Below, one piece after another: positions 9,689-29,594 of a stretch of DNA of 64,000 nt (positions are counted from its first letter, which is position 1; every line of letters begins with the position of its first letter). Where the stretch lies: the IMG/VR virus record IMGVR_UViG_3300028384_001500, positions 62,001 to 126,000 of that record. One strand, given 5' to 3'. The notes beneath the pieces are model-generated. The model ran no database searches and had not been told where the DNA came from. It saw nothing but the letters and a program-made list of their open reading frames with translations. Both the position numbers and the translations under genes were made by a program.

Positions 9689-10600
9689 CTAAATAATATG
9701 TCCTGAATTAATTTTAATTTCTATTTTGCAATAATCACCTTGACGGTCACATTTAAAATATCGAAAAACTTCTGCTGTAAGATGTTTAATAAAGTTAAGA
9801 TCATATGACAGTGTTTCTTTCACATTTGATGATCGTAAAAAGAACTTTGCGTCCATGTGGCCATCACGAACTAAAAAATGAGCAAGGCTAATACAAGAAT
9901 TATCAGTGTAAATATATCTTCTCGAGTCCAACCCTTCTGCTCTTTCGTACTCATTTTCACCTCGCATTTCTGCTTTAATTTTATTAAATACTGCATTTTC
10001 AATTTTTCGGTAGTATTCTTTTTCTTTGTGGTAGTTTAACATTGTTTTGTTGACGTCGGAAAAATCGCCTGTATCATAATGAACAAAATTAAGGCCTAGT
10101 ACTTCGTTGCCGCTTTTAAGGGCTGCCATTTGTGTTGCTGCGTTACTGAGGTTGGCCATAGAATCATTTTCCAGTTTATAATACTGGTTTACTAAGTCTT
10201 TGACTAACTGTTTATCCACAACCTTACCAATAACTGTCACATTAGGATAATTGCCAAATTCATCAGCAGCCTCTTGAAAAAGATCGTATATTTTTCTAAG
10301 ACTAGTGATGTTTTGAATTGGATCACCTCGTTTTTGAAAACGATCAACAATTACCTTCCATTCAGGCAAGCAGATAATTGTTTGGTTGTTTAAGTTGTGT
10401 AATTCTCGTTTTAATTGTTCAACGTGATTAAAAGTGTCGCGACCGTAATAACGAGCGTGAATAAGCATAGAAAGTGCAGATCGATCTTGAATATTCCACT
10501 TATATCCTGTTTCTTTATGAATCATTTCATAAAGAGTTGTTTTTCCACTACAATCAGGGCCTTCAATAAAAATATAATCAATTGGTGTGCTGTGTGACAT
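9689..10600 (-). CDS. dNMP (thymidylate-type) kinase fused to a truncated ThyA/dCMP-hydroxymethylase-fold domain
   Basis: N-terminal IFIEGPDCSGKTT and QDRS; C-terminal DSRRYIY, SCISLAHFLVRDG, RSSNVKETLSYD, NSGHII. Confidence 0.72.
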   Translation of the reverse strand: MSHSTPIDYIFIEGPDCSGKTTLYEMIHKETGYKWNIQDRSALSMLIHARYYGRDTFNHVEQLKRELHNLNNQTIICLPEWKVIVDRFQKRGDPIQNITSLRKIYDLFQEAADEFGNYPNVTVIGKVVDKQLVKDLVNQYYKLENDSMANLSNAATQMAALKSGNEVLGLNFVHYDTGDFSDVNKTMLNYHKEKEYYRKIENAVFNKIKAEMRGENEYERAEGLDSRRYIYTDNSCISLAHFLVRDGHMDAKFFLRSSNVKETLSYDLNFIKHLTAEVFRYFKCDRQGDYCKIEIKINSGHII

Positions 10601-10621
10601 TTATTACCTCATTTATATAGT

Positions 10622-10650
10622 ATTATATTTTAAAGGCAATAAATTTACAT
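10622..10650 (-). promoter_or_regulatory. Early sigma70-like promoter ATGTAA-17-TATAAT
   Basis: Exact 17-nt spacer, upstream of the kinase fusion. Confidence 0.65.
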
Positions 10651-10654
10651 TTAA

Positions 10655-11590
10655 TTAAGCAGGAGGAGTACCTCTTAACCAGAAATATAGATCTTTTATA
10701 AAATCTTTAATGTTAGAACTTCCGCCCGGGCCTTTTTTAAGTACTTCTTTTTTAACGAGACGATAGCTACCGTCGCTTTTTTTAACAAGTTGTTCAATAG
10801 TATGCCTTGAACCGTCTTTTCTAATTACATACCTTATCGATCCTTTTCTACCTGCTACATCTTTTAATACATCCCATTCCATCACCGGATCTAAGCCGTC
10901 GTAAGTTAGATCAAATTTACTAGCTATGTCAGGGCTTAGATCAGCCAGATGATCATCAGCAACTCTTAAAAGTTCATCAACAGCTGATTCAGTAGGAGAG
11001 ATAAATGGGTCAAAGACACCTGCAGCTCCGGCAGCAGCAGTTCCGGCTAACATGTTCTTAAGAAGGTCGCGACGGCTTAAATTCATTGACAGATTGGTCA
11101 CGTCAATTGTATTTCCATCGTCTTCGTCAGGCGTCATTTCTATGCTAGGATAGTTGGTTGGTCCTGGCAAAGCATGCATATTTTTTCCTTTACTCGGGCT
11201 TTGAGATTTAGATGAAGCTGGTACTATTTCTTTTTTTGCTGTGGGCTGAAACTGATCTTCCCAGGATCTTTTTTTGTTTGGATCTGCAGATGCGTATTCA
11301 GAACTTCTTCTGTTTATCTTGACCTTTAGCGGTTCGATTGGAGGTACAGACATACCGGCTTCCTTTGCAGCAATTCTTTTTTGTGTTTCTTCTTTGACTT
11401 GCTGAAGGAATATTTGATACATTCTATCGTAATCGTCTAGATCTTTTGCTTGTGCTGCTAACAGTTCAAACTCTTCACCTAGCTCTAACTCTACTTGCAT
11501 TCTAATTAACTCTTTTTCTGATTTGGATAAGCGGGCTTCGTTCAGTATGTTTTTGATTATTTTTTTTAATTTATGCTTCGTTAGTTTCAT
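10655..11590 (-). CDS. Leader-bearing hypothetical protein with an internal Tat-like motif
   Basis: MKLTKHKLKKIIKNILNEA leader; internal SRRDLLKNMLAGTAAAGAAG. Confidence 0.7.
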   Translation of the reverse strand: MKLTKHKLKKIIKNILNEARLSKSEKELIRMQVELELGEEFELLAAQAKDLDDYDRMYQIFLQQVKEETQKRIAAKEAGMSVPPIEPLKVKINRRSSEYASADPNKKRSWEDQFQPTAKKEIVPASSKSQSPSKGKNMHALPGPTNYPSIEMTPDEDDGNTIDVTNLSMNLSRRDLLKNMLAGTAAAGAAGVFDPFISPTESAVDELLRVADDHLADLSPDIASKFDLTYDGLDPVMEWDVLKDVAGRKGSIRYVIRKDGSRHTIEQLVKKSDGSYRLVKKEVLKKGPGGSSNIKDFIKDLYFWLRGTPPA

Positions 11591-14100: not shown

Positions 14101-17100
14101 TTAATCAGTTACTAAAGGTCTTACTTTTCTTGAACTAGTGCTAGCACCCCAATTAGGATCGTTAGATGCGTCAGTTAACCATATTGAATACGGCACCATT
14201 GTTTCAGGTTTCTCGCCCCACATTCTTAACCAGCCTGTGTTGTTTTCATAGTCTGTAATTTTAAGTCGATAAAAAGTCTTTTTATTCTTAGTTGTCTTTT
14301 TAATCATGTCAACAATACAACACCAAGCAATGCATTTTTCACCAGGTAACATTTTAAGAACTGACTTAACGCCTGCTGATTGTATTTTTTCCATCATATC
14401 ATCTGGGAAAGCAAGATCATCACGTGTTGCTGAACAAAGATCTTGATACATTGTTAACTTGTCAATTCTACCCCAGTCTTCAATGTCTTTTGTTTGATCA
14501 ATAAGAATAGGCAGGATAGGGTCAGCATCTTTTTTCTTTGCTTGCCGGAGTGTCATACCATACTTTGACTTTTTAAGTGTGTTATAATTTTCAATAATAA
14601 TTTCGTAAAGCTGTTTATGATTATTGATTGTTCCATCCCACATTTCTTGCAGGCCATTAAATGCCTCAACTTGACATAGAGATGCAAAACCGGTTTTGTT
14701 AAGTTTAGAGTGACGCCATTTACCTTCATCATTGAACAACATGTCAGCAACTGATTTATATGGCCTGTTTTGCATAATTTCAACAACTGCTGTTTTACCT
14801 ACACCTTTGATTGATGTTAAGGGTGGTATAAAGGCTTTTTTCTTATCAGACCATTGCCAATATGTACCTGATTCGTTAACATCTGGCAATTCAACACGGT
14901 AACCCATTTCTTTAATTTCAGCAATTGCCTTGGTTAATGCGTTAGGGTTATTGTTTTCTGACTCAAGAATAGTACCTAACCAGTCTGTTTCGTAGTAAGT
15001 ATGCAACCATGCTGCGTAATACGAACCGATTGCATATGCGACAGCATGCGACTTATTAAAACCATAAACTGAGAAGAATTCAATACGCTCCCATAGTTCT
15101 TGCGAGACATGCTCTGGCACACCATTAATTTCTTTCGCACCGGTTACAAACTTAATGCGTGCAGCTTCACGTTCATCACCTTTCTTACCCATTGTATCGA
15201 GAGATTTTTTAACCAAGGTTTTACGAAGTTTATCTGACTCAGCTGGTGTGAAACCGCCTAACTTTTGTGCAAGAAGCATAAACTGTTCTTGAAAGGTAAC
15301 ATGACCAAACGTCGGTCCAAGAATATCCTTAATGATAGGATGATCATAGTGGATTTCATCAGCACGCATTTTATCTTTTACATATTTCTTGTGCACGTTT
15401 GCTCGAAGTGGACCTGGTCGATAAATAGCTGTAAGTGCGGCTAATTCAATAATTGTTGTTGGTTTAGCATCTTCACAAAAGCGACGAGCACCTTCAGCAG
15501 TAAATTGAAAAACACCTACCTTGCGACGCTGATGGTATACATGTTTCCAAACCTCAGGATCGTCTTGTTCTACATAACGACAATTTAGATGCTTATCAAA
15601 CCAATCACGAATTTCTAGAAATGTAGGTTCTTTACCTGTTTCACGCGTCAAAATACGCTTAATGCAGTTTTCAACGTCTTTAAGTAGTGTTAAGCCAAGA
15701 AAGTCAAACTTAATAAACCCGTTATCTTCAAGATTACGAAAGTTCATACCTTCTGTCCACGGTGTTTGTAGTTCACCTCGCACACCAATAATAGGCATGC
15801 CGCGAGCTAAATCATCAGCTGGGCCAATAATAACACCACCTGCGTGTCGACCAATCGATCGATTTTGCATGAATAGTGCTTCGATATGATCCTTTACTTT
15901 TGGGTATTTTTCCATAAAAGAGCGGTAACCTTTTGAATATGTCATGCAGTCTTCGTGTTTAAGAACAAATACAGACTTTTCAGTATTTTCATCACGAGCT
16001 TGAGACATCACCTCATCTTGTAAAGGGCCGGTCATTTTATTTACTTCAGCAAAGTCGACACCGTAAAACTTAGCGATATCTTTAACAAGTGATTTAAGCT
16101 TAAGTGTGTTAAAGTTGGAGACAGGAATTACAGCTTCATCGCCATATAGTTCACGGGCAGCGTTAATTAGCGCATCACGATCACCAGCATCAGAGTCGAT
16201 ATCGGGCCACGAAGTACGATGTCGACCTAGAAAACGCTCCCATAGCAAATCATATTTAAGTGGATCAACTTGGGTAATCCCTAATAAGTAATTTACTAAT
16301 GAGCCTCCACCAGAGCCACGGGCTGCGCCAAATAGAGTATGATCTGCTGCCTTATGAAAGACTTCATTCATTACTAAGAAGTAGTTTTCGAATCCGAGGA
16401 ACTTGATGTCTTCGAGCTCGTGTTTTGCTCGTTCAACGTATTCAGTTTTTGTATGAAGGCCTTCTTTAACAAGTGCTTGTTTGACTTTTTGCGCCAGCTG
16501 TTGAAAAGCAGTTTGATTAGGGTTGTTGAAATCGGGAAGCTTAACAGAAGTATCAATCCAACAGTCTTCACACTTTTGCCATGCAATATCATGTGTAATT
16601 TCAATCGATCTTTTAATTGTTTCTTCATATCCTTCGTATGTTTCTTTATATTCGTCATAATGTCGTGTAAATTCATCCCACATCTGTGTTGCGTTCTTTG
16701 GATAAAGCTCACATTTTAGATCTTCAAACTCTGGTAACGGACTTGGGTCGTTACCCATCCACCCTAATTTTTTATAAAGTTCTCTTGCCTCCCATTTATC
16801 AGGTGAATAATAGTGTGAGTCTGGCGTGGATATCAGCTGTAAACCTGTTTGATCAGCATGCCGCAAGAGATGATGATTAACAAGGTGCTGCTGTTTAAGT
16901 CGATTAAATTGCAACTCTAAGTAGAAGTTATCTTCACCTACAGCGTCAACAAATCGCTCAGATAAGTATGACAGTTCTTGCTGAATTTGCTCGTCTGATA
17001 TTTTTAAAGCATTACCACGCATAATACGATTAGAATATATTCCACCTAGACAGGCTGTAGAAACATTGAGCCCTTTACCGTATTGTCTAAGCAGGTCAAA

Positions 17101-17619
17101 GTCAATACGAGGATATCTATAAAAGCCATCAGTATAAGCACGTTTAATTAGAGTAAATAAGTTACCTAAACCTTCACGGTTTTGCGCAGTAACTACCAGA
17201 TGATAACGTCGTTTCCATTCGTCTTTACCTAAATCAAAAGACTTAGTTTCTTCTTCGTTTTCAATGATATGACCACCTTCTTCCTCTTCTTTGATTGCCT
17301 TTTTCTTTGCAGCAGCTCGATCGATTTTAGCTTGTTCATAATCAGCTTTCCAGTCTTTAAGTGAAGGAACAAAATAAAACTCACAACCGTAAATCTGACG
17401 AAACTTACGACCAGACTTTTTAACTTTTTCAGCATGCTTATGAGCATGTGCCAATCCACTACCGTTTCCATGATCAGTTAATGCCCAAGCATCCATGCCG
17501 TTTTCTAGTACAAAGTCAATATGGTCAGAGGGGTACCCTAATCCATCAAAAACAGAAAAACCTGTGTGACCGTGAAAACCAACAAATCGATCGGGCGGGG
17601 TAAGTAATTTGATATCCAT
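14101..17619 (-). CDS. dnaE: DNA polymerase III alpha subunit (family C)
   Basis: PHP HGHTGFSVFDG/TDHG/DSH, GAARGSGGGSLV, PDIDSD, GRHAGG, KFDFLGL, FQF, YRPGP, YGFNKSHAVAY. Confidence 0.96.
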   Translation of the reverse strand: MDIKLLTPPDRFVGFHGHTGFSVFDGLGYPSDHIDFVLENGMDAWALTDHGNGSGLAHAHKHAEKVKKSGRKFRQIYGCEFYFVPSLKDWKADYEQAKIDRAAAKKKAIKEEEEGGHIIENEEETKSFDLGKDEWKRRYHLVVTAQNREGLGNLFTLIKRAYTDGFYRYPRIDFDLLRQYGKGLNVSTACLGGIYSNRIMRGNALKISDEQIQQELSYLSERFVDAVGEDNFYLELQFNRLKQQHLVNHHLLRHADQTGLQLISTPDSHYYSPDKWEARELYKKLGWMGNDPSPLPEFEDLKCELYPKNATQMWDEFTRHYDEYKETYEGYEETIKRSIEITHDIAWQKCEDCWIDTSVKLPDFNNPNQTAFQQLAQKVKQALVKEGLHTKTEYVERAKHELEDIKFLGFENYFLVMNEVFHKAADHTLFGAARGSGGGSLVNYLLGITQVDPLKYDLLWERFLGRHRTSWPDIDSDAGDRDALINAARELYGDEAVIPVSNFNTLKLKSLVKDIAKFYGVDFAEVNKMTGPLQDEVMSQARDENTEKSVFVLKHEDCMTYSKGYRSFMEKYPKVKDHIEALFMQNRSIGRHAGGVIIGPADDLARGMPIIGVRGELQTPWTEGMNFRNLEDNGFIKFDFLGLTLLKDVENCIKRILTRETGKEPTFLEIRDWFDKHLNCRYVEQDDPEVWKHVYHQRRKVGVFQFTAEGARRFCEDAKPTTIIELAALTAIYRPGPLRANVHKKYVKDKMRADEIHYDHPIIKDILGPTFGHVTFQEQFMLLAQKLGGFTPAESDKLRKTLVKKSLDTMGKKGDEREAARIKFVTGAKEINGVPEHVSQELWERIEFFSVYGFNKSHAVAYAIGSYYAAWLHTYYETDWLGTILESENNNPNALTKAIAEIKEMGYRVELPDVNESGTYWQWSDKKKAFIPPLTSIKGVGKTAVVEIMQNRPYKSVADMLFNDEGKWRHSKLNKTGFASLCQVEAFNGLQEMWDGTINNHKQLYEIIIENYNTLKKSKYGMTLRQAKKKDADPILPILIDQTKDIEDWGRIDKLTMYQDLCSATRDDLAFPDDMMEKIQSAGVKSVLKMLPGEKCIAWCCIVDMIKKTTKNKKTFYRLKITDYENNTGWLRMWGEKPETMVPYSIWLTDASNDPNWGASTSSRKVRPLVTD

Positions 17620-18109: not shown

Positions 18110-19102
18110 TTAAAAGAATTCTGTCAAGTCAATGTTTTTTTCTTCTGCTTCTTCAAGAAAACGAAGCGGATTGTAACCTTCTGATTTTAATATGCTTTCA
18201 AACGACATTCGAATTCCTTCTTCTAGTGATATTCTAGGAGACCAGCCAGTATACTCTCTGACCTTTTTACCACTTAAGATATGATTTCCCATATACTCTG
18301 TCTGCGGGAGCCATTCAATTGTATCTGCAAAACTCTGGCCGCAAACACGATCCATAAGTGATACTATCTCACCGGTGACAAGCGGTGTTTCAGCAGCGAT
18401 ATTAAAGTCGTTATTCCAGCACTTTTCTTCTTTAATGCAAGAAAAGACACCGTCACAATAGTCATTGACATGTAGGTAGTCTTTGATTTTTGTTGGATCC
18501 AAAAACATTTGGACCTTTTTTACGCCGTTTAGCTTCGCGTAAATTGTTTTGGCAATGAGTGAATTCATATCACCGTCACCACCGTAAGCAAAGAGAGGTC
18601 GTACAATCATCCATTTATCACTATGTGACTTGACTACTTCTTCAGCTGCCAATTTTTGGCATCCATAAAATGTATGCGGGCCTCTATCTGAATTTTCTTT
18701 TATTTGGCTTTGCTGGTATTTTTCCGTTGCATAGATGACAGTTGTACCCATATAACAAACAGGAATACCACATTTCTTTGCCGCACGGCAGATGTTAAAT
18801 GTGCCTTGCACGTTTGTTAACGTCGACTCTTTTGAGTTAAGAGCAACAACATCAGTACCAACAACTGCTGCGTTGTGGATGACAACATCAATATCGTTAA
18901 CTTCAAAAAACTTTTGCCATGCTGTTTCGCTATTACGGTGAATACAAGGTTCACCTTTTTCTGTGGTATATTGTGACACATACGCTGCATCTTCATTTAA
19001 TTCATGTACACCTGATATAAATTGAAAACCGTGCATCTTTGCCCGTTTGGCAAGATTAGTGCCGATAAAGCCGCGTTCACCTGTTATAAAAACTTTTGAC
19101 AT
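18110..19102 (-). CDS. Second NAD-dependent NDP-sugar epimerase/dehydratase
   Basis: ITGERGFIG, HNAAVVG, YGCQK (YxxxK), RPLFAYG, KDYLHVND. Confidence 0.88.
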   Translation of the reverse strand: MSKVFITGERGFIGTNLAKRAKMHGFQFISGVHELNEDAAYVSQYTTEKGEPCIHRNSETAWQKFFEVNDIDVVIHNAAVVGTDVVALNSKESTLTNVQGTFNICRAAKKCGIPVCYMGTTVIYATEKYQQSQIKENSDRGPHTFYGCQKLAAEEVVKSHSDKWMIVRPLFAYGGDGDMNSLIAKTIYAKLNGVKKVQMFLDPTKIKDYLHVNDYCDGVFSCIKEEKCWNNDFNIAAETPLVTGEIVSLMDRVCGQSFADTIEWLPQTEYMGNHILSGKKVREYTGWSPRISLEEGIRMSFESILKSEGYNPLRFLEEAEEKNIDLTEFF

Positions 19103-22354: not shown

Positions 22355-23500
22355 TTACTCTTCATCATCACCAAAAAACGAGTCACTTGCTGCACTTGCG
22401 ATATTTTGAAGTTTATTTGCTCCGCCGAAAGTCAATGACTGTAGTGCATCAGTCGCGTACGCACCAATATCCCACAATGTACCTAGTACTTCATTAGGTG
22501 ATTCTTTATCCAGCTCAATGTCAATTGGAATCCCGGTGTAACCAAAGAGCCCCTCATAAAATCTACAAATATTTTCTATTGATGCTCTTGATAAAAAGTC
22601 TTCAGGTACCCACCCTTTTTTCTTACCACGATAGACTAATAAATTACCTTTTGCTGCAGCTGACAAAAACTTTTTAAAATTTTCTTCTTTTTGAAAAAAT
22701 TCAGGATCTTCAGCAGCTCTTTGCCCTTTTTTAATGTCGTCTTGTCCAAGTAAATTAACTGCGGGATTAAAATCATACTGATCTTTTATGAAGATCTTGT
22801 CATTTTTTACTACAACTGTCATATGTGTAAAACTATTGAAGATATTATTTAAAGGATCTTTTGATGTAAGACTGTCTTTAATAGAAGAATTACCTTTCAT
22901 ATTTTCAGCCATGTTATACGTTCCTGTACTAGGACCGCCAAATCTTTCAACATATGCTTTTGATGTAGCAACACGCTTATAGTCGGCATCAGAACCCCAC
23001 CCGCCTATTTTGTTTGTCTTTTTATGTTTAACAGCGTCAGCTGCTATAATTCTTAAACAATCTGCTAAAGAAGTTGTTAATGAATTTTCAGTTATTGGTG
23101 CAGTTCTCATTTCCACAAAGTCAAAAAACAATTGTGATATCCAATTTTCTTGCCCTAAAACAGCTAAAAAAGGCCGAAGAAGAACAACAGCAGACTTTGC
23201 AGTAATTGCTGTTGCAACTGAAAATAAACCCGCGCCTTTATTTTCTTTTTCTCTTGATTTTTCAAACTCTTTACCAAATTTTTCGTAAGCTACATAAAGA
23301 CCGTCCCAAGTAGAACTACCTGATGCTTTTGTGATGTCAATTTCAGGATCAGCAGCTTCTTCCTTTTTATTAGCTAGCATCCAAGCTCTAAACTCATCTG
23401 AAGTTTTTTTATCTTTGGCATATTTCCACGTTTTACCTTCACCGGCTTCAGTTAAATAATTTTCAATTAAAATTCTTAAATTTCTTTTTGATATTCTCAT
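22355..23500 (-). CDS. Leader-bearing protein with a DxYDFN motif
   Basis: MRISKRNLRILIENYLTEA; shares a roughly 55-aa domain with 19560..20642; KDQYDFN at 22766-22783. Confidence 0.65.
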   Translation of the reverse strand: MRISKRNLRILIENYLTEAGEGKTWKYAKDKKTSDEFRAWMLANKKEEAADPEIDITKASGSSTWDGLYVAYEKFGKEFEKSREKENKGAGLFSVATAITAKSAVVLLRPFLAVLGQENWISQLFFDFVEMRTAPITENSLTTSLADCLRIIAADAVKHKKTNKIGGWGSDADYKRVATSKAYVERFGGPSTGTYNMAENMKGNSSIKDSLTSKDPLNNIFNSFTHMTVVVKNDKIFIKDQYDFNPAVNLLGQDDIKKGQRAAEDPEFFQKEENFKKFLSAAAKGNLLVYRGKKKGWVPEDFLSRASIENICRFYEGLFGYTGIPIDIELDKESPNEVLGTLWDIGAYATDALQSLTFGGANKLQNIASAASDSFFGDDEE

Positions 23501-23511
23501 AACATTCCTTT

Positions 23512-24552
23512 TTATTTTAAAGTTTCTTTTGCTAAGTTTACAGCGTGAGGTGGAAATTGAAAAAGTTTTTTGTCAATTGATCCTGGCATTTTTCCTTTTT
23601 TTGCAAGATGTAGTAGTTTGTATCCTAAACTAGAACAATTATCTGATCCATCACTTTTAGTAACTGTATCGTCCCCAGTGAAAGTATCAATCATACCCCT
23701 TAAAGAACTTGCCAAGTCTCCAGCAGATGATGCCGGAACTAATGAGTACTTATTGCATTTATAACTAGCTGTATGACCAATTACTTTATTGATAAATTTG
23801 CAGTCATTAATAATTGCATAATCTTCATAGTCTGATGTTCTACTAAGAATGTTTTCAACTTCGCCTTCTTTGAATAAATAGTGTGTACCATCTTTTGATT
23901 TTACCAAAGATGCTTCCGGCCCGGGTAAATCTTTTTTAACTAAAGATCCAACAGCATATACACCTACTGATCCACCAATTGCATTTAAAATATTTTCAAA
24001 AGCACTTTTATTTTTTTGTTGACATTCCGCATGCCCTCCATCCTCTTTAGAATAGACACCAAAATCTACGCTAAAAGGAATTCTTGTCCTAGGATGAATA
24101 TAAATCACCTTAATATGTCCTTCAGGTATTGCGTCTAATACTTTTTTCTTTGCTGACTCAGGAACCATACCAATAAACAAGTCTGATACAGGCTTGGAGG
24201 TTGTATTAATTATGATTGCAGGATACCCTACATCTTTTTCATATGCATACTTTCTACCTGTCTGCTTTTTTGATATCATTTTTTCAACTTCTGCATTGAT
24301 TTTTTGATGTACGTCTTTATAAGCAGACTTAATTTTTTCTAAACTTAAAGGCTTTTCTTTACTCACGTTTGAAACATCAGTACCTGAAATTTTTGCTTGC
24401 GCAGGCCAAGAAGTAAGAAATATACCCTTGCTATCTTTATACCCTTTAATATTAAAGTTTGAAAATTTTATAGAAAATTCTTTTTTTTCATTTTCGTTTT
24501 CAAACAAATATTGCTTAATTAAATTTTTTAAGTTATTTTCAGATATTAACAT
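23512..24552 (-). CDS. Leader-bearing protein with a permuted papain-like domain (paralogue of 19560..20642)
   Basis: MLISENNLKNLIKQYLFEN; PEGHIKVIYI...VDFGVY; YSLVP...DNCSSL. Confidence 0.55.
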   Translation of the reverse strand: MLISENNLKNLIKQYLFENENEKKEFSIKFSNFNIKGYKDSKGIFLTSWPAQAKISGTDVSNVSKEKPLSLEKIKSAYKDVHQKINAEVEKMISKKQTGRKYAYEKDVGYPAIIINTTSKPVSDLFIGMVPESAKKKVLDAIPEGHIKVIYIHPRTRIPFSVDFGVYSKEDGGHAECQQKNKSAFENILNAIGGSVGVYAVGSLVKKDLPGPEASLVKSKDGTHYLFKEGEVENILSRTSDYEDYAIINDCKFINKVIGHTASYKCNKYSLVPASSAGDLASSLRGMIDTFTGDDTVTKSDGSDNCSSLGYKLLHLAKKGKMPGSIDKKLFQFPPHAVNLAKETLK

Positions 24553-24562
24553 TATCGCTTCC

Positions 24563-25162
24563 TTAAAAAGAAGACTTCATAGATGCATCACCAGATGACT
24601 TTGCTGATTTTGCAATTGAATCTGTTGACTTTCTTAAAGAGTCAGCAGATGAATCCATTGCAGCACTTAATATGTCACCAAAAGAAAACTTTTTCTGTTT
24701 TTCTTTATCCATTGTAAAAGTTTTACCCATTGTAGAAGCTTTTGGTCCCGCAACAACTCTAAATTTGTCACCACCAGCTTTCTGATAAAGATACGGATCT
24801 TGCTTTCTAGATCCTACTTCACCCATTTCTGTCATACCGCTTGACCAAAATTTATCTAACCCCTTCCAAATAAAGTAGTCTTTTGATTTTAAATCTTTTC
24901 CTGTTCTTTTTCCAATTGAATTCATTACATTCTTAACTTGATTATTAGTTCCAGGTGCAGCATCACCAACACCATATTGGTTCCCGCCAAAGTGAATTTT
25001 AAGTGCTTCTTTGTTTGATTTATCAGCAACAAAGTGTCCTGAATTTGGTAACATGTCGTCACCAAACATTTTCTTTGCCATTTGTTCAAAAGCGTTTTCG
25101 TTGATTGCGTAACTAATAGCTTCGTTAATAAGTCGTCTAAGCTGCATTCTAGAAAGTTTCAT
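24563..25162 (-). CDS. Leader-bearing hypothetical protein
   Basis: Start revised to 25162 (GGAG RBS); MKLSRMQLRRLINEAISYAINEN. Confidence 0.7.
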   Translation of the reverse strand: MKLSRMQLRRLINEAISYAINENAFEQMAKKMFGDDMLPNSGHFVADKSNKEALKIHFGGNQYGVGDAAPGTNNQVKNVMNSIGKRTGKDLKSKDYFIWKGLDKFWSSGMTEMGEVGSRKQDPYLYQKAGGDKFRVVAGPKASTMGKTFTMDKEKQKKFSFGDILSAAMDSSADSLRKSTDSIAKSAKSSGDASMKSSF

Positions 25163-25184
25163 ATTATACTCCAAATAAAATAAA

Positions 25185-25209
25185 AGGTCAGAATTAATTA
25201 TTCTGACCT
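25185..25209 (-). terminator. Intrinsic terminator with an ATAATTA motif across its arm and loop
   Basis: 10-bp stem AGGTCAGAAT/ATTCTGACCT followed by a T-run on the minus strand. Confidence 0.7.
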
Positions 25210-25238: not shown

Positions 25239-25688
25239 TTATTCGATATCACCTTGATATCGCTCAACAATAAGTCTTTCTGTAACCTTACATTGTGCGA
25301 GATAAACATCTAGATCCTCTAAAGATCTACACACCTTAATACCACTTGCTGCTAGCATAAGATTAAATTGTGCACCTGGAGGAAGCCCATCGCAAAAATA
25401 CACAATTGGCTTTTCTAGACAATTCATGTAACCTGCTTCAAAAATACTACCCATGTCTTTATTTCGAGTATTACATAACATCCAATCACACTCATGTAAA
25501 TGTTTAATATTACCACTAAAGATTTGATCTTGCATTGATTCATTAGCATCATTATCACATAGATTTTCATCTTTTGGTGAAAAATAGCTAACACCATGCT
25601 TTTCAAATACCGATTTAATATTTTCTACTTCTTCAAGCCATTCAGGTGAAAACCACCCACTAGCTAAATAAACTTTTCCAAATCCCAT
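25239..25688 (-). CDS. Nucleoside 2'-deoxyribosyltransferase / nucleotide N-hydrolase (NDT, Rcl, MilB-like)
   Basis: KVYLASGWFS, YFSP, IFSGNIKHLHECD, DMGSIFEAGY, KPIV. Confidence 0.85.
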   Translation of the reverse strand: MGFGKVYLASGWFSPEWLEEVENIKSVFEKHGVSYFSPKDENLCDNDANESMQDQIFSGNIKHLHECDWMLCNTRNKDMGSIFEAGYMNCLEKPIVYFCDGLPPGAQFNLMLAASGIKVCRSLEDLDVYLAQCKVTERLIVERYQGDIE

Positions 25689-25689
25689 G

Positions 25690-26676
25690 TTATTGTCTCC
25701 CCATAAATTGATTATGTTCTTGTGTTAGTTCGTTAATTTCGCTTAAAGCATTTTCCCATAGCTTTGTAAATACTGTGTCGCCACCTGGGTTTTCTGTACC
25801 ATTAATGTCTTCCCGGCGTGATTGATATATACTGTCATTTGGGTGATAATCAAAGATATCATTCTTGGGTTCTGGCCAGTAAAGATTCGTACCTCTAGAT
25901 GTGTGACCACCTTTACCATCAGGTACTCGGAAAGTTTTAACGTAATGCATATCTGGTTTGCCGAAATTAATACGTGTACTTGCTTCAGGTAAAACTTTAA
26001 GTACTTCTCGTGCCATGTATGCAGCAAGCAGATTATCAGCTGCAGGTTGAATTTGCATATCTTGACGTTGAGCAATAAAACCTAACAGATCTTTTAAATT
26101 AAGACGCATTAGATAGAATGACGTCATTGCTTTTGGAAGTATCATTCGAGCGTCCATCATAGATACAGCTTTTGAGTCTGTCATATCTGCGTAGAGCTGT
26201 TTTGACTCACGTACGAGACGGCGCCACCTATCAGCAAACTCAGGACTATTTTGTACTGATTCAGGAATAACTGCATCGTCATGGCGCAAGTCGCGGTCAC
26301 CTGTACATTGTGCTGCAAAAGAACCAGCACGATGGCGAATAATATGAGTAACTTCTTGAAATGAAAGCCCTGACAATTTAAAGGTAAAACCTAGACATTC
26401 CATAGGGGTTGGTAATGCACGAAAATTAAGTACATCTTCAAGATTTTCTGACAACTCTTTTAAAGAAGCTGTTGCCGGGTTTGTGTCATCGTGATGATCA
26501 GCCCAAGTAGCTTTTACATATTGCCATGCAACATTAAGCGCTTGAGATCGAGTTGGTGCATCTACAAGTTCTACTTTAAGTGCTTTAAGGTTATTATGAA
26601 ATGTTGTTTTTGGTTCTTCACCAAACTTTAAATCCATTGGTAAAGTAATAGGAATTAAATTTAAGTTTTGAGGCAT
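25690..26676 (-). CDS. thyX: Flavin-dependent thymidylate synthase-like protein (divergent)
   Basis: THIIRHRAGSFAAQC (RHRx7S with Cys), DARMILP, NLKDLLGFIAQR. Confidence 0.75.
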   Translation of the reverse strand: MPQNLNLIPITLPMDLKFGEEPKTTFHNNLKALKVELVDAPTRSQALNVAWQYVKATWADHHDDTNPATASLKELSENLEDVLNFRALPTPMECLGFTFKLSGLSFQEVTHIIRHRAGSFAAQCTGDRDLRHDDAVIPESVQNSPEFADRWRRLVRESKQLYADMTDSKAVSMMDARMILPKAMTSFYLMRLNLKDLLGFIAQRQDMQIQPAADNLLAAYMAREVLKVLPEASTRINFGKPDMHYVKTFRVPDGKGGHTSRGTNLYWPEPKNDIFDYHPNDSIYQSRREDINGTENPGGDTVFTKLWENALSEINELTQEHNQFMGRQ

Positions 26677-26707
26677 TTTATCTCCTTGTTAAATAATGTG
26701 TGTTTAT

Positions 26708-26746
26708 ATAATATAGCAAAAAAAGCACTATTACAAAATAGTGCTT
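26708..26746 (-). terminator. Terminator (stem 26723-26732/26737-26746) overlapping promoter TTGTAA-17-TATTAT for thyX
   Basis: 10-bp stem with a T7 run; -35 at 26731-26736, -10 at 26708-26713. Confidence 0.6.
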
Positions 26747-26768
26747 AATTATTTTAAAGTATTTTTAA

Positions 26769-26999
26769 TTATTTTATTAAGTTAACTGATGATGCCATTT
26801 CCGGGTCAAAATCCATCCTTAACTCAATAAGCGGATTAAATTTTACACCGCTTCTTTCTACAATAAGCGCACCTTGCGGTTTTACTAACTCTCCAGAAAT
26901 TTCTATTCCGTCAAAATCAATCTCTGTTTCTTTTTGATACTTTACACTTCTGTCATTTTCTTGACTATACGCTAATGCTATCCCTAATATTAAAAACAT
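26769..26999 (-). CDS. cglF: CglF/GltF-like adventurous gliding motility protein
   Basis: Signal peptide; ETEIDFDGIEISGELVKPQG...FNPLIELRMDFDPEMASSV matches the recalled myxobacterial CglF pattern; AGGAGG RBS. Confidence 0.75.
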   Translation of the reverse strand: MFLILGIALAYSQENDRSVKYQKETEIDFDGIEISGELVKPQGALIVERSGVKFNPLIELRMDFDPEMASSVNLIK

Positions 27000-27000
27000 T

Positions 27001-27954
27001 TTACCCTCCTAATAATAAATTTAATTCTTTTAAAGTTGACATTGCCTGATAATAGTTTTCATAATGAAAAATATTTTCATTGTTTAAATGTTCATTGTAT
27101 GCTTTTTTAGGAACCAAACACTTAATACCGTGTTTTGCATAGTCTTCAGCATGTTTTGGCGCGTCGTCAATGGCAAACTTAATTGCACCTTGATCATAGT
27201 ATTTTGACTTAGCACACCAACGAAATTTTTCAGCTGAAAAACTAATTGCATCACACGGAATGTTTTGTTGGCAAATCCAAAAATACGTATCATACAAGCA
27301 TTGCAACTCTTCTTCAGGGCGTGCAGTCAAAAGATGAATCCAGTATCCTCGGTGCTTTAATTGCCATAGAAGTTCTAAATTATCTGTGTCAATTGAAAGT
27401 TTTGCAAATCCTTCGTCATCTAAGAACATTTTAAAGACTGCTTCAGAGTTAAGATTGATTTTTGACAATGCTGAAATAAAGTAGTATTCTTTTGAGTTGA
27501 CATCAGCATCTACTTTAAATTTTTCTTTAAGCCAGTCAGAAAAACCTTGACGGAAGTTTGCCAGCACGTCATCAATATCTACAATTGCAACCGGTTGAAG
27601 ATCTTTCCGTTTTCTATTTTGCAATTCACGGTGTTTGTTAAGGTAGATATCTTTTTTATTAAAAGCTTTTTCAAACTCTTCTGGAGTTATTTCCCATGTG
27701 TTTAATGTAGCCATCATATATCTAATGACGTCAACTGTTTCATACAAAACAGTTTTTCTATTTGCTAAAGGTTCTGTATGTGAATGATGATTTTTATAGT
27801 GGGTTGCGTTAACTAATGCACTTAATTCAGCATGCGCACATAAGACATTTTCTTGCGTAATTTTCTCTTTAAGTTCACGTGATAATTGATCTGATCTTCC
27901 TACAATTTTATTGTTGTATACCTTTTGAAGGTTCATCATGCGTTTGAATGACAA
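27001..27954 (-). CDS. Degenerate MazG-like domain fused to a HAD 5'(3')-deoxyribonucleotidase
   Basis: HAELSAL...YETVDVIRY; IVDIDDVL, LLTAR, AIDDAP. Confidence 0.75.
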   Translation of the reverse strand: MSFKRMMNLQKVYNNKIVGRSDQLSRELKEKITQENVLCAHAELSALVNATHYKNHHSHTEPLANRKTVLYETVDVIRYMMATLNTWEITPEEFEKAFNKKDIYLNKHRELQNRKRKDLQPVAIVDIDDVLANFRQGFSDWLKEKFKVDADVNSKEYYFISALSKINLNSEAVFKMFLDDEGFAKLSIDTDNLELLWQLKHRGYWIHLLTARPEEELQCLYDTYFWICQQNIPCDAISFSAEKFRWCAKSKYYDQGAIKFAIDDAPKHAEDYAKHGIKCLVPKKAYNEHLNNENIFHYENYYQAMSTLKELNLLLGG

Positions 27955-28168
27955 ATTTCACCTCTTTATTATTTATTTTAAAGTTATTAAATTCATTTAA
28001 ATAATAATCAAACATGTCATTTTTTACATTATTAAAAATAAACATTGTGTCTTTTGTTTCAACGCTACCAGAAATTAAAACGTTTCCAACCATATTTTTT
28101 TTAATGGTTGAAAACGTCTTTTTGTTATCTGGTAATTCCTTTCCGTTAAAAATTACCTTAGTACCCAT
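27908..28168 (-). CDS. Hypothetical protein
   Basis: Overlaps both neighbours within the operon. Confidence 0.55.
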   Translation of the reverse strand: MGTKVIFNGKELPDNKKTFSTIKKNMVGNVLISGSVETKDTMFIFNNVKNDMFDYYLNEFNNFKINNKEVKFVIQTHDEPSKGIQQ

Positions 28169-28535
28169 TCCTTAACCTCTCCTTAATTATCTTGTGTTTT
28201 GATAAAAAAGCTTGATAAAGGTCATTCTCATCAAATCCTGTCACAATAAGCATTGCAAAAAAGTAGTTAAATGCGTCAACAATCTCTTCTAAAAATTCAT
28301 CTTTGTCAACTTCTGGTATATCAGTTTGGCGATGAGGTTTCCAATTTTTAAGATGCTGTAGTGCTTCAAACATTTCTTCAACGCCTTTAAGCGCTAAATC
28401 TCTGCAAACTTGCTGTGATTCTTTTTGTGACATGTCAAGAGGAAAGTCAGGATAAGAGCCGGGGATGTTTTCTTTCATTTCATTAATAAAATCTAATCGC
28501 TTATCAAACATTTCTTTAAGTTTGCAATTAGTCAT
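28158..28535 (-). CDS. MazG-superfamily all-alpha dUTPase/dCTPase
   Basis: GVEEMFEALQHLKNWKPH; FLEEIVDAFNYF. Confidence 0.8.
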   Translation of the reverse strand: MTNCKLKEMFDKRLDFINEMKENIPGSYPDFPLDMSQKESQQVCRDLALKGVEEMFEALQHLKNWKPHRQTDIPEVDKDEFLEEIVDAFNYFFAMLIVTGFDENDLYQAFLSKHKIIKERLRNGY

Positions 28536-28774
28536 TAGGACTCCTGATCAGGTTTAATCTTAGCAGCTTCTGATAACATTTTTTCAATATTAGATTTTTG
28601 GGTTTTTTCATACTCTGGTTCTAGGTGTAAAGAGCCATTTTCATCTGATACTAATTGAATCATTCTAAAGTGATCAACAACATCTGTCCCTGTAATAAAG
28701 CCTAGTTGGATCAATTGAACAATATGTGCTATAGTGCTATCGTTAAGTTTAAAATTGCTTAGTTTGTTTTCCAT
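28535..28774 (-). CDS. Conserved phage hypothetical protein
   Basis: LIQLGFITGTDVVDHFRMI; RBS present. Confidence 0.65.
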   Translation of the reverse strand: MENKLSNFKLNDSTIAHIVQLIQLGFITGTDVVDHFRMIQLVSDENGSLHLEPEYEKTQKSNIEKMLSEAAKIKPDQES

Positions 28775-28784
28775 TTTTTATCTC

Positions 28785-29594
28785 CTACTTTTGAAATGAT
28801 GGTACCCAATGTGTTGTTCTTTTATCAGCAGTTTTTTCTTTAATTACTGCCCTTCCATTTGGGTCAGTTTTCTGATTATACACTGCAAATCTTCGACTGT
28901 ACAATCCTTCCTTACCATTTGGTTGCCTATAACTTTCAATTGTTGCACCACCTATTTTGTACGATCTTTTTGATTGAGTAAACGTATTATAGTAAAGATC
29001 ATGCCATTCATCGTTAGATATGTCTTTAACCAATCGATTAGGTGATACTTTGGAATTCCAAAGAATTTCAGCCTTGAGGTAATTACCAACCCCTGAAATA
29101 ACTGATTGATTCATAAGACATTCCGCAATTGTTTTGTTTTGTTTTTTAATAAATCTATTTTTAAAACCTTTCCAATCGATATTTGCTGTTAAAACATCTG
29201 GACCTAATGAATTAAGCTTTTTATTTAAAACTTTTTTATCGTTAACAAATTTAAGTGTTCCAAAGTTTCTAATATCATTATAATAAAGTTCTGTTCCATC
29301 GTCAAAAAACATTACAAATCTTGCGTGTTTGTGTCGTTTATTACTCCACATACCAGTCATTCCTAGTGTACTAAAAAGATAATATTCGCTATAACCTTCA
29401 GTAAAGGTTATATAAATAAATTTACCTTTGCAATTTGCTGCATGAAATATTGCTGGTAAAGTAATAATATCTTCTCCGGGTATACTACCTTTTTTACTAT
29501 AACGACCGGATAATATTGAATATCCTGTCAAACCTTTTCCGTTAAATTGCGTTAAAAAGTCTGTTGTTGTTCTTACTTCTGGTCCTTCTGGCAT
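28785..29594 (-). CDS. mutM: Fpg/Nei DNA glycosylase-AP lyase (zincless finger)
   Basis: MPEGPEV, KGKF, LGMTG, NDIRNFG, LGPD, LMNQSVISGVGNYLKAE, RTTHWVP. Confidence 0.92.
   Translation of the reverse strand: MPEGPEVRTTTDFLTQFNGKGLTGYSILSGRYSKKGSIPGEDIITLPAIFHAANCKGKFIYITFTEGYSEYYLFSTLGMTGMWSNKRHKHARFVMFFDDGTELYYNDIRNFGTLKFVNDKKVLNKKLNSLGPDVLTANIDWKGFKNRFIKKQNKTIAECLMNQSVISGVGNYLKAEILWNSKVSPNRLVKDISNDEWHDLYYNTFTQSKRSYKIGGATIESYRQPNGKEGLYSRRFAVYNQKTDPNGRAVIKEKTADKRTTHWVPSFQK

Follow-up and report, generated by a model that had tools for sequence, protein, structure and literature searches.

Genes at the locus

The window analyzed here is a 64,000-nucleotide stretch of IMG/VR record IMGVR_UViG_3300028384_001500 (positions 62,001 to 126,000 of that record), from a large uncultured marine phage. 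A run of genes on the minus strand at 25239-29594 carries an Fpg/Nei glycosylase and several putative nucleotide-metabolism enzymes, with terminator-like hairpins found by a consensus scan only:

28785-29594 (-), Fpg/Nei-family DNA glycosylase/AP lyase (269 aa), starting MPEGPEV and without a Cys-rich zinc finger at the C-terminus
28535-28774 (-), conserved 79-aa ORF without a Pfam or PHROG hit, whose stop overlaps the start of the MazG-like gene
28158-28535 (-), small all-alpha MazG/dUTPase_2-like NTP pyrophosphatase (125 aa), a candidate dCTPase
27908-28168 (-), 86-aa ORF overlapping both neighbors, possibly not a real gene, with no family hit and conserved only in close relatives (8 loci)
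27001-27954 (-), degenerate MazG-like domain fused to an NT5C-like HAD phosphatase (317 aa), a probable dNMP 5'-nucleotidase
26769-26999 (-), 76-aa ORF with no family hit, conserved only in close relatives (13 loci)
26723-26746 (-), terminator-like hairpin in the 92-nt gap before the ThyX-like gene
25690-26676 (-), ThyXL, a divergent ThyX-fold paralogue (328 aa)
25239-25688 (-), nucleoside 2-deoxyribosyltransferase (NDT; 149 aa), starting 1 nt after the ThyXL stop
25185-25209 (-), terminator-like hairpin after the NDT

The remainder of the window contains additional genes relevant to the interpretation, alongside APRT and RNR:

3400-3816 (-), dCMP deaminase (phrog_174, 138 bits)
4671-5249 (-), thymidine kinase (PF00265, 139.6 bits)
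5242-6258 (-), GalE-like SDR NDP-sugar epimerase/dehydratase (PF01370, 149.8 bits; NCBIfam galE, 139.6 bits, under the cut-off)
8889-9308 (-), trimeric dUTPase (PF00692, 75.1 bits; phrog_135, 180 bits)
9689-10600 (-), fusion of a YorR/Tmk-like nucleotide kinase (residues about 8-148) with a miniature ThyA-fold domain (about 150-303)
14101-17619 (-), DnaE/Pol III alpha-like replicative DNA polymerase (phrog_405, 743 bits; nearest cultured matches annotated DnaE-like Pol III alpha)
18110-19102 (-), second SDR NDP-sugar epimerase/dehydratase (phrog_540, 137 bits; generic SDR matches in NCBIfam)

The initial annotation described the run as a tight operon of a MazG-type pyrophosphatase, a degenerate MazG-HAD nucleotidase, a ThyX-like protein and an NDT/MilB-like hydrolase next to Fpg, with a separate trimeric dut. 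This observation is confirmed, as all four domains were found on the minus strand by Pfam and PHROGs profile searches. The NDT matched PF05014 with 60.7 bits and ThyXL matched PF02511 with 67.6 bits. In the 317-aa protein, the C-terminal half matched PF06941 with 21.8 bits, just under the Pfam cut-off of 24.8, and phrog_420 and phrog_415 with about 43-45 bits, while the N-terminal half matched phrog_173. The 125-aa pyrophosphatase matched phrog_12184 with 63.6 bits and PF08761 with 21.6 bits, and relatives in the Atlas are fused to dCMP deaminase, to ThyX, and to NT5C. The glycosylase matched PF01149, PF06831, and PF21025 over their cut-offs, and scored 150.9 bits to NCBIfam fpg and 78.9 bits to nei, both under the equivalog cut-offs. 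The one correction is that the single tight operon may be two units, given the two terminator-like hairpins.

Residue conservation supports the description of the N-terminal domain of the 317-aa protein as degenerate. Across 52 homologues, it keeps only one Glu and one Asp of the acidic metal motif, whereas the HAD motifs (DxDD, T, K, DD) are 100% conserved. In contrast, the 125-aa pyrophosphatase has an intact metal motif, with E54, E57, E83, E84, and D87 conserved in 73 homologues. In the NDT, the N-terminal Y7, D78, and E84, including the catalytic Glu and the Asp that binds the 5'-OH, are 100% conserved in 88 homologues. The NDT is closest to true nucleoside deoxyribosyltransferases, with the Bacillus psychrosaccharolyticus NDT 6evs and the Lactobacillus PTD 1s2d as its best solved relatives (about 30% identity at most), and no MilB, BlsM, or DNPH1 chain was matched at E up to 1; the proposed similarity to MilB-type nucleotide hydrolases is therefore not supported.

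The ThyX-like paralogue and the kinase fusion

ThyXL is a second, divergent ThyX paralogue, which the initial annotation did not recognize and which we consider the least understood and most novel part of the gene set. It carries VTHxxRHRxxSFxAQCTGDRD in place of the ThyX motif and has a roughly 90-aa C-terminal extension. It scored 44.9 bits to NCBIfam thyX against a cut-off of 87.9, and its family comprises 532 clusters at 50% identity. The AF2 model (pLDDT 94.6) has the Thy1 fold (TM 0.75 by target), with the UMP/dUMP methylase PolB (PDB 4p5b) as the best PDB match, followed by ThyX structures (such as PDB 1o26). ThyXL keeps the RHR triad and the equivalents of E58, S83, R147, N163, R174, and Q180, but the equivalents of T. 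maritima R74, Q75, H53, E86, S88, and Y91 are changed. A canonical ThyX with an intact motif lies elsewhere in the genome.

The 9689-10600 protein is a kinase fused to a miniature ThyA-fold domain. Its AF2 model (pLDDT 90.9) gave 9iqu, the phage HY126 dCMP hydroxylase, as the top Foldseek hit, with T4 dCMP hydroxymethylase and ThyA also matching, and alignment with VIA-align gave Z 13.9 for YorR and Z 11.4 over 147 residues for 9iqu. A profile search against the PDB had T4 dCMP hydroxymethylase (gp42) as best hit, a weak match (E 0.021) that fixes the residue equivalences. Residue spacing matches E. coli ThyA exactly, with C236 equivalent to the catalytic C146, S257 to S167, N259 to D169, and D267 to N177, and with an acidic residue at L143; C236, N259, and D267 are among the invariant residues. 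Asp at the N177 position specifies dCMP, and the Asp169-to-Asn change is published as diagnostic of 5-hydroxy-dCMP synthases (PMC13326640), so that the residue signature points to 5-hydroxylation rather than T4-type hydroxymethylation. However, the mini-ThyA is only about 150 residues long, against 217 for the HY126 hydroxylase and 246 for T4 gp42, and was not detected by Pfam PF00303. It may be inactive or do something else, and the D169N rule was established on full-length enzymes.

Conservation and genomic context

A scan of IMG/VR with the family-specific motif AQCTGDRD as degenerate DNA gave at least 119 loci. Of 122 loci carrying the ThyX-like gene, 108 have the NDT, 88 the small MazG-like gene, 72 the 79-aa ORF (directly upstream of the MazG-like gene), and 50 the Fpg within the flanks, in conserved order, an arrangement far beyond chance. 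Homologues of the second SDR epimerase/dehydratase lie in 67 of 123 ThyXL loci. Among 16 large relatives, 13, including a complete 239.5-kb genome, keep both ThyX types, none has ThyA, and 12 keep the kinase fusion 7-18 kb from ThyXL.

In unrelated phages, ThyXL directly abuts split versions of the kinase and mini-ThyA. A homologue of the kinase domain directly follows or precedes ThyXL in five loci from distant phages (L135, L131, L004, L137, and L130), and a mini-ThyA homologue lies next to ThyXL, with overlapping stop and start codons, in GR1, in the GR1-like locus L005, and in L135. An NDT is also found there, and an HD-domain YfbR-like 5'-deoxynucleotidase occupies the position next to the NDT that the HAD enzyme holds here. 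In contrast to its solved relatives, this NDT is always linked to ThyXL and to a nucleotidase. DNA glycosylases of three superfamilies accompany ThyXL: Fpg/Nei in the lineage of the window, UDG in L135, and HhH-GPD in locus L136. Nth (HhH) and Nei-like enzymes are reported to act on 5-hydroxy-C and 5-hydroxy-U (PMC3260424), and UDG reportedly excises 5-hydroxy-U (Hatahet et al., 1994). Glycosyltransferases are found in some cases: ThyXL is fused to a GT2-like domain in P0141 (a weak hit of 22.1 bits against a cut-off of 23.3) and lies near a PHROG 'alpha-glucosyltransferase' in GR1. The genome studied here has no homologue of the GR1 glycosyltransferase, but carries a five-gene glycosyltransferase island about 100 kb away, with GT4-type (MshA/BshA-like) matches, which could serve another target.

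A candidate cytosine-replacement pathway and its alternatives

Our best explanation, held with roughly even confidence, is that the window encodes the nucleotide-pool half of a pre-replicative cytosine-replacement pathway, of the kind known from T4 (5-hydroxymethyl-C) and, more closely, from RB69, DLP3, and HY126 (5-hydroxy-C), but in a new architecture built from unusual parts. In this view, the small MazG-like pyrophosphatase would turn dCTP into dCMP, depleting the canonical triphosphate and feeding the next step. The mini-ThyA domain would bind dCMP through Asp267, attack C6 with Cys236, and modify C5, most likely, given Asn259, by flavin-dependent hydroxylation to 5-hydroxy-dCMP. The fused kinase would phosphorylate the product, which cellular kinases and the phage's own DnaE-type polymerase would put into DNA. 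ThyXL would belong to the same pathway, in our preferred role as a flavin-handling partner of the truncated mini-ThyA, which lacks the N-terminal half that full-length homologues have, or possibly as a pyrimidine C5-modifying enzyme in its own right. The HAD nucleotidase and the NDT would drain an unwanted deoxynucleotide, either a canonical one or a deaminated by-product such as 5-hydroxy-dUMP, down to the nucleoside and swap or release its base; the Fpg/Nei glycosylase would remove 5-hydroxypyrimidine lesions, such as deaminated 5-hydroxy-U, from phage DNA; and glycosyltransferases elsewhere in the genome may then decorate the base. Domain identities, folds, residue signatures, paralogy, and synteny are what our analysis establishes, while every substrate, every product, and the presence of a modified base are inferred from them.

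The interpretation in the initial annotation, that dCTP is removed, modified by the 9689-10600 fusion, and possibly glycosylated using the epimerase products by analogy to T4, is partly supported. The analogy of pyrophosphatase, dCMP modifier, and kinase holds at the level of homology, the MazG-like enzyme is redundant as a dUTPase because a trimeric dUTPase coexists with it here and in L005, and SDR sugar epimerases do lie in the window. Several observations weigh against the pathway. T4-type and RB69-type pathways need neither an NDT, a 5'-nucleotidase, nor a ThyX-like protein, leaving half of the conserved module unexplained by the analogy. ThyXL keeps the arginine that contacts uracil O4 in ThyX (R204, equivalent to T. 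maritima R174), which argues for a uracil rather than a cytosine substrate. The genome has no arabinose-5-phosphate isomerase or NDP-sugar pyrophosphorylase, a complex prediction for ThyXL with the fusion gave no answer, and a phage dCMP deaminase, thymidine kinase, and canonical ThyX fit ordinary metabolism as well as they fit a T4-like scheme.

The closest known system is the 5-hydroxycytosine pathway of phages RB69, DLP3, HY126 (Afh), and RL38J1 (PMC13326640; PDB 9iqu, 9iqc), which shares a ThyA-superfamily enzyme with the catalytic Cys, N177D, and D169N, a MazG-like dCTPase in the genome, a HAD phosphatase resembling 5'(3')-deoxyribonucleotidase, GT4-type glycosyltransferases elsewhere in the genome, and a YorR/Tmk-like nucleotide kinase, encoded next to the synthase in DLP3, RB69, and RL38J1. 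Here the ThyA-like domain is instead cut down and fused to the kinase, the isomerase and a sugar nucleotidyltransferase are absent, and the module additionally holds a ThyX-like flavoprotein, an NDT, and an Fpg/Nei glycosylase, none of which is part of the published clusters; the replicase is DnaE-type, and the phage is a marine jumbo phage, not a member of the Straboviridae. The T4 pathway (gp56 dCTPase, gp42 dCMP hydroxymethylase, gp1 dNMP kinase, glucosyltransferases) follows the same logic of an all-alpha pyrophosphatase, a ThyA-fold dCMP modifier with Asp at the N177 position, and a kinase, accompanied by dCMP deaminase, a thymidylate synthase, and thymidine kinase. However, gp42 has Asp at position 169 (its D171), the T4 kinase is unfused and belongs to another family, and T4 has no ThyX-like gene, NDT, or 5'-nucleotidase in the pathway.

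Ordinary dTTP supply and salvage is an unlikely but possible alternative, in which ThyXL is a divergent thymidylate synthase, the adjacent kinase a thymidylate kinase, and the MazG-like enzyme a second dUTPase or a house-cleaning enzyme, with the nucleotidase, NDT, and thymidine kinase reshuffling host deoxynucleosides toward the A+T-rich (about 65% A+T) phage genome and no modified base made. The retained Thy1 fold, RHR triad, and R147 and R174 equivalents are consistent with this, as are the natural pairing of thymidylate synthase with thymidylate kinase, the finding that ThyXL is the only thymidylate-synthase-like gene in GR1, the thymidine kinase, APRT, dCMP deaminase, and RNR in the window, and surveys of archaeal and marine viruses listing ThyX, NDT, MazG, and 5'-nucleotidase as common nucleotide-metabolism genes. 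On the other hand, the double redundancy of a canonical ThyX and a trimeric dUTPase with ThyXL and the MazG-like enzyme is conserved (both ThyX types in 13 of 16 relatives), ThyXL has lost several ThyX residues and scores half the NCBIfam cut-off, the kinase is fused to, or next to, a ThyA-like domain with the dCMP-type Asp, which has no role in dTTP supply, a 5'-nucleotidase works against nucleotide supply, and glycosyltransferases are fused or adjacent to ThyXL in some phages.

Somewhat less likely still is a thymine-type modification, in which ThyXL converts dUMP into a 5-substituted dUMP, for example 5-hydroxymethyl-dUMP formed when water traps the exocyclic methylene intermediate of ThyX chemistry, the MazG-like enzyme and the nucleotidase act as dTTPase and dTMPase, as in hmU and uracil-DNA Bacillus phages, and the NDT with thymidine kinase recycles the deoxyribose of excluded thymidine into dUMP. 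The uracil-O4 arginine, the structural match to a UMP/dUMP methylase, and the gene content of GR1 favor this reading; a dNTPase plus a dNMP 5'-nucleotidase is the classical thymine-exclusion pair of phages phi-e, SP8, and PBS2, and an NDT would make sense because dTMP cannot be demethylated. However, the marine lineage keeps a canonical ThyX, often 2-4 kb from ThyXL, together with thymidine kinase, which is senseless if thymine were excluded (although partial replacement remains possible), and the dCMP-type mini-ThyA is not explained. We regard as very unlikely the production of a free modified pyrimidine base or nucleoside, serving as an antimetabolite, a signal, or a substrate for base exchange into DNA. 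This would follow the logic of the MilA/MilB (mildiomycin) or Bcm (bacimethrin) clusters, in which a C5-modifying enzyme is paired with an NDT-fold N-glycosidase; those clusters act on CMP and release a free base for antibiotic synthesis; MilA is a CMP hydroxymethylase and ThyA homologue (PMC13326640). Here the NDT looks nucleoside-specific, a dedicated nucleotide kinase next to the modifier points toward triphosphate synthesis, and no DNA transglycosylase homologue was identified. Nevertheless, the pairing of a C5 modifier with an NDT fold is the most constant feature of the module, DNA glycosylase-family genes sit beside ThyXL, and a methyltransferase follows the kinase in L131.

The conserved gene module and its ThyX-like paralogue

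The single 236,652-bp IMG/VR virus record from which bases 62,001-126,000 were examined is rated 77% complete by CheckV. About 93% of its roughly 241 ORFs lie on the minus strand, and its G+C content is about 35%. We found no relative at the nucleotide level when the operon was compared by blastn with 50,697 phage genomes, although homologues of the genes discussed here are very abundant in marine metagenomes, including Tara samples. The initial annotation had described a tight run containing a MazG-type pyrophosphatase, a degenerate MazG-HAD nucleotidase, a ThyX-like protein and an NDT/MilB-like hydrolase next to Fpg, with a separate trimeric dut, and this observation is confirmed. Genes in the run and elsewhere in the window are as follows (window coordinates).

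Genes from 29594 down to 25239 (minus strand), in order
Fpg/Nei glycosylase
Conserved 79-aa ORF
125-aa MazG/dUTPase_2-like pyrophosphatase
86-aa ORF
317-aa protein with a MazG-like N-terminal half and a HAD (NT5C-like) C-terminal half
76-aa ORF
328-aa ThyX-like protein (ThyXL)
149-aa nucleoside 2-deoxyribosyltransferase (NDT)
Elsewhere in the window
8889-9308, trimeric dUTPase
9689-10600, kinase and ThyA-like fusion protein
14101-17619, DnaE/Pol III alpha-like replicase

Gene ends in the run touch or overlap, except for a 92-nt gap before ThyXL that holds a terminator-like hairpin; a second hairpin follows the NDT. Immediately downstream of the NDT (22355-25174, minus strand), three adjacent ORFs of 381, 346 and 203 aa share an N-terminal motif, M-x-[IL]S-x2-3-[NQ]L[RK]xLI, which is found in only these 3 of the 241 ORFs in the genome and could be a shared targeting or processing signal. 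The 203-aa ORF, the only one scanned, has no Pfam or PHROG hit, and its homologues follow the NDT in about 10-12 relatives.

To ask whether the arrangement is conserved, we scanned IMG/VR for the back-translated core of a motif specific to ThyXL, VTHxxRHRxxSFxAQCTGDRD, which returned at least 119 loci. Of 122 loci with ThyXL, 108 have the NDT next to it, 88 the small pyrophosphatase, about 60 the full-length MazG-HAD fusion, 72 the 79-aa ORF and 50 the Fpg, all in the same order. This is a conserved module, not a chance neighbourhood. In a subset of marine relatives (loci L007, L006 and about 35 others, for example L007:3590-4234), the MazG-HAD gene is replaced, between ThyXL and the small pyrophosphatase, by a 214-aa protein with no Pfam or PHROG hit and no detectable similarity to the HAD protein.

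Family alignments drawn from related loci show that the small pyrophosphatase keeps the acidic metal-binding motif of MazG-like all-alpha NTP pyrophosphatases (ExxE ... EExxD; E54, E57, E83, E84 and D87), whereas the N-domain of the 317-aa protein has lost most of it. The HAD motifs I-IV of the 317-aa protein are 100% conserved, but its score against PF06941 (NT5C) is 21.8 bits, below the cut-off of 24.8, and published look-alikes act on sugar phosphates. The NDT scores 60.7 bits against PF05014 (cut-off 28.8), and its catalytic Tyr, Asp and Glu (Y7, D78 and E84) are 100% conserved. Among solved structures it matches only true NDT and PTD chains (aligned to 6evs and 1s2d), and it keeps the Asp that binds the 5'-OH.

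ThyXL is a paralogue distinct from the canonical ThyX of the genome. The canonical gene, at genome positions 9,993-10,667 on the plus strand (outside the window; locus L002:1453-2127), scores 159 bits, carries the full ThyX motif and matches solved ThyX chains at E 1e-42, and the genome has no ThyA. It sits alone on the plus strand, so it looks like an inserted gene, and in several relatives it lies only 2-4 kb from ThyXL. ThyXL shows no BLASTP similarity to it. ThyXL does have the Thy1 fold (PF02511, 67.6 bits), and its AF2 model (pLDDT 94.6) matches ThyX and PolB structures with TM 0.64-0.80 by target, the best match being the UMP/dUMP methylase PolB. However, it scores 44.9 bits against the curated TIGR02170 thyX equivalog cut-off of 87.9 and lacks the ThyX motif RHRxxSxxxxSxR(Y), having RHRAGSFAAQCTGDRD instead. 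Alignment to T. maritima ThyX shows that the equivalents of R78, H79, R80, S83, E58, R147, N163, R174 and Q180 are kept, while R74, Q75, H53, E86, S88 and Y91 are changed (R74 to T, Q75 to H, E86 to A/Q, S88 to C and Y91 to D) and R90 is shifted if kept at all; of these positions, R74, Q75, E86, S88, R90 and Y91 are dUMP-binding residues in T. maritima ThyX. We considered the Cys at the S88 position (Cys124) as an essential nucleophile, but rejected this because it is replaced by G, T, A or S in several subfamilies.

Thirteen of 16 large relatives keep both a canonical ThyX and ThyXL, and none has ThyA; one of the 13 is a complete 239,550-bp genome with terminal repeats. The ThyXL family is large and diverse, with 532 clusters at 50% identity, yet among 50,697 cultured phage genomes the only full-length match is Geobacillus phage GR1, at 46% identity. 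Streptococcus phage vB_SagM-GXN1, which like GR1 is in culture, carries a still more distant Thy1-like gene in the same context. Literature searches found no paper on this ThyX-like subfamily.

A kinase fused to a predicted miniature ThyA-like domain

Pfam, NCBIfam and PHROGs detect only a P-loop in the 9689-10600 protein, and PF00303 finds nothing in the genome, which would suggest a plain kinase with an unknown tail. We rejected this reading because an ESM Atlas search pointed to Tmk::ThyA fusion proteins, and structure prediction, structure search and a family profile then exposed a ThyA-like domain. We aligned 25 homologues and predicted the structure (pLDDT 90.9). Residues 8-148 superpose on YorR, deoxynucleoside kinases and thymidylate kinases (Z 12-14). 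The C-terminal domain superposes on the phage HY126 dCMP hydroxylase, PDB 9iqu (Foldseek top hit, E 3.6e-5; VIA-align Z 11.4, rmsd 2.9), and also on T4 dCMP hydroxymethylase and ThyA. Only about 147 residues superpose on the 217-residue 9iqu; the ThyA-like part is cut down to about 150 residues, which is why PF00303 misses it.

A profile of the C-domain has T4 dCMP hydroxymethylase (gp42) as its best PDB hit, though a weak one (E 0.021), followed by ThyA chains. The alignment places C236 on the catalytic Cys (T4 C148, E. coli C146), R256 and S257 on the Arg-Ser pair (R166 and S167), N259 on E. coli D169 (T4 D171) and D267 on E. coli N177 (T4 D179). C236, R256 and S257 are invariant in 25 fused homologues and in 3 split ones, and D267 is invariant. 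N259 is present in the window protein, in GR1, in the GR1-like locus L005 and in most marine homologues, but is Asp in the homologues P0364, P0366 and P0368 and in L135, a contig of ENA ERZ21869602. According to PMC13326640, Asp at the N177 position goes with dCMP specificity, an acidic residue at L143 goes with non-methyl products, and D169N singled out 5-hydroxy-dCMP synthases, all nine tested candidates having made 5-hydroxy-dC. The same paper lists a YorR/Tmk-like 'nucleotide kinase' next to the synthase in DLP3, RB69 and RL38J1, and a MazG-like dCTPase in DLP3 and RB69. The window protein therefore unites, in one chain, the two adjacent genes of the published clusters.

Homologues of both domains recur beside ThyXL in other phages, suggesting that ThyXL belongs to the same pathway. 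In GR1 and L005, a 150-aa ORF whose start overlaps the ThyXL stop is homologous to the mini-ThyA (hhalign 87.7%, E 3.4e-6, and HMM hits), and a separate 145-aa homologue of the kinase domain lies three genes upstream. In L135 the order is ThyXL, kinase, mini-ThyA, UDG, with overlapping ends. In three other ThyXL loci, L131, L137 and L130, the kinase homologue directly follows ThyXL, and in a fourth, L004, it directly precedes a GT2-like::ThyXL fusion. In the marine lineage the fused form lies 7-18 kb from ThyXL in 12 of 16 relatives. A complex prediction of ThyXL with the fusion was uninformative and counts neither for nor against binding.

The other partners recur as well. An NDT is found in GR1, L004, L130, L131, L137 and the Streptococcus phage, and the nearest cultured relative of the window's NDT is again that of GR1. 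A small MazG/dUTPase_2-like gene is found in GR1, L004, L005 and L130. A putative 5'-nucleotidase is also present, but it is of the HD YfbR-like type in those lineages and of the HAD type here; this looks like non-homologous displacement of one function and favours a nucleotidase role for the HAD protein. DNA glycosylases of three superfamilies accompany ThyXL: Fpg/Nei here, UDG in L135 and HhH-GPD in another ThyXL locus, L136. Nth and Nei-like enzymes are reported to act on 5-hydroxycytosine and 5-hydroxyuracil (PMC3260424). UDG is reported to excise 5-hydroxyuracil (Hatahet et al., 1994).

A possible cytosine-modification pathway

The proposal in the initial annotation of a T4-analogous modified-base pathway is partly supported and can now be stated more precisely, as a 5-hydroxycytosine-type pathway in a new architecture. 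The domain assignments, residue signatures, paralogy and gene neighbourhoods are results of the analysis, whereas the pathway itself is inferred, including each enzyme's activity, any flavin or folate cofactor, the dCTPase function, the formation of a 5-hydroxy- or 5-hydroxymethyl-dCMP product and the presence of a non-canonical base in virion DNA. In this view, the small pyrophosphatase would hydrolyse dCTP to dCMP, an assignment supported only by redundancy with the trimeric dUTPase and by fusions of relatives to pyrimidine enzymes. The mini-ThyA would modify dCMP at C5, with the residue signature predicting hydroxylation, and the fused kinase would start the climb back to the triphosphate for incorporation by the phage polymerase. 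ThyXL may supply or handle the flavin for a mini-ThyA that has lost the N-terminal half, or may be a second C5-modifying enzyme. The nucleotidase and NDT would dispose of, or recycle, an unwanted nucleotide, and the glycosylase would police 5-hydroxypyrimidine lesions. Finally, the two SDR sugar enzymes in the window, together with a five-gene glycosyltransferase island elsewhere in the genome, could glycosylate the base.

We consider a cytosine-modification pathway about as likely as not, and are less sure of the exact chemistry. The mini-ThyA may be too small to act alone, and the D169N rule was derived from full-length enzymes. ThyXL keeps the uracil-O4 arginine, and the published pathways need no NDT, no nucleotidase and no ThyX-like protein. 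The RB69-type UDP-arabinose route was not found, as the genome has no SIS isomerase and no NTP_transferase. A search of public sequencing runs for read-level evidence of modified bases returned only contigs, none sharing more than 8% of the sampled words. Among the alternatives, ordinary dTTP supply and salvage is unlikely, being weakened by the conserved double redundancy and the dCMP-type mini-ThyA. Somewhat less likely still is a thymine-type modification made by ThyXL with thymine exclusion, given the canonical ThyX and thymidine kinase retained in the marine lineage. A MilA/MilB-like route to a free base seems remote in view of the apparently nucleoside-type NDT and the dedicated kinase.

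The ThyX-like paralogue, together with the NDT, putative nucleotidase and glycosylase arm, is the unexplained and most novel part. A tentative possibility, which we consider less likely than not, is that the ThyX-like family (hundreds of clusters, abundant in marine viromes, one Geobacillus phage isolate) is a new class of flavin-dependent pyrimidine-nucleotide enzyme that does not make dTMP. It may be the flavin component of a two-part dCMP hydroxylase, with the truncated ThyA-like protein as the substrate-activating component, or it may install a second, so far undescribed base modification. In either case the NDT, the 5'-nucleotidase and a dedicated DNA glycosylase would form a pool- and DNA-level quality-control arm that no described phage modification pathway has.

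If the cytosine-modification reading is correct, 5-hydroxycytosine-type (or related) DNA would extend from a few enterobacterial, Acinetobacter and Rhizobium phages to an abundant lineage of marine jumbo phages and to Firmicutes phages, which bears on restriction and CRISPR evasion in the ocean and on biases in sequencing such DNA. It would also define the smallest known ThyA-fold catalytic unit, as a natural kinase fusion, and would give a first functional context to a large ThyX-like family that is currently auto-annotated as 'thymidylate synthase'. The conserved NDT, putative nucleotidase and glycosylase suggest how a phage might police a chemically unstable base.

Glycosyltransferases, related neighbourhoods and other genes

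The glycosyltransferase island lies outside the window, at genome positions 203000-214100 (loci L125-L129), and comprises three GT1/GT4-type genes, one of them MshA/BshA-like, and two GT2-type genes, one of 641 aa. Their target could be DNA, the virion or the host envelope. GR1 (L001, OK896991.1, 23.9-36.7 kb) has a PHROG 'alpha-glucosyltransferase' (E 6e-53), of which the genome studied here has no homologue. GR1 has ThyXL as its only thymidylate-synthase-like gene, surrounded by an NDT, an HD YfbR-like protein (PHROG 'dATP triphosphohydrolase'), the alpha-glucosyltransferase, a split kinase and mini-ThyA, a nitroreductase-type flavin reductase, a dUTPase_2-like gene and a NUDIX gene, and is a ready experimental model for the family.

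A similar neighbourhood in Vibrio phage 150E35-1 (L138, OX241562.1) reads HD protein, unknown 384-aa protein, NDT, NTP pyrophosphohydrolase, unknown 385-aa protein, cytidylyltransferase-like protein and DXD glycosyltransferase. It resembles the module, but the two unknown proteins show no detectable similarity to ThyXL. In L135 (7001-14477), the distant ThyXL, kinase, mini-ThyA and UDG cluster is followed by two radical-SAM proteins and a ferredoxin-like protein, suggesting a further hypermodification step in that lineage. The window itself also encodes, at 2442-3119, 3820-4659 and 8108-8662, an Fe/Mn superoxide dismutase, a DHH/DHHA1 phosphoesterase and an adenine phosphoribosyltransferase that passes the NCBIfam equivalog cut-off (205 bits against 125).
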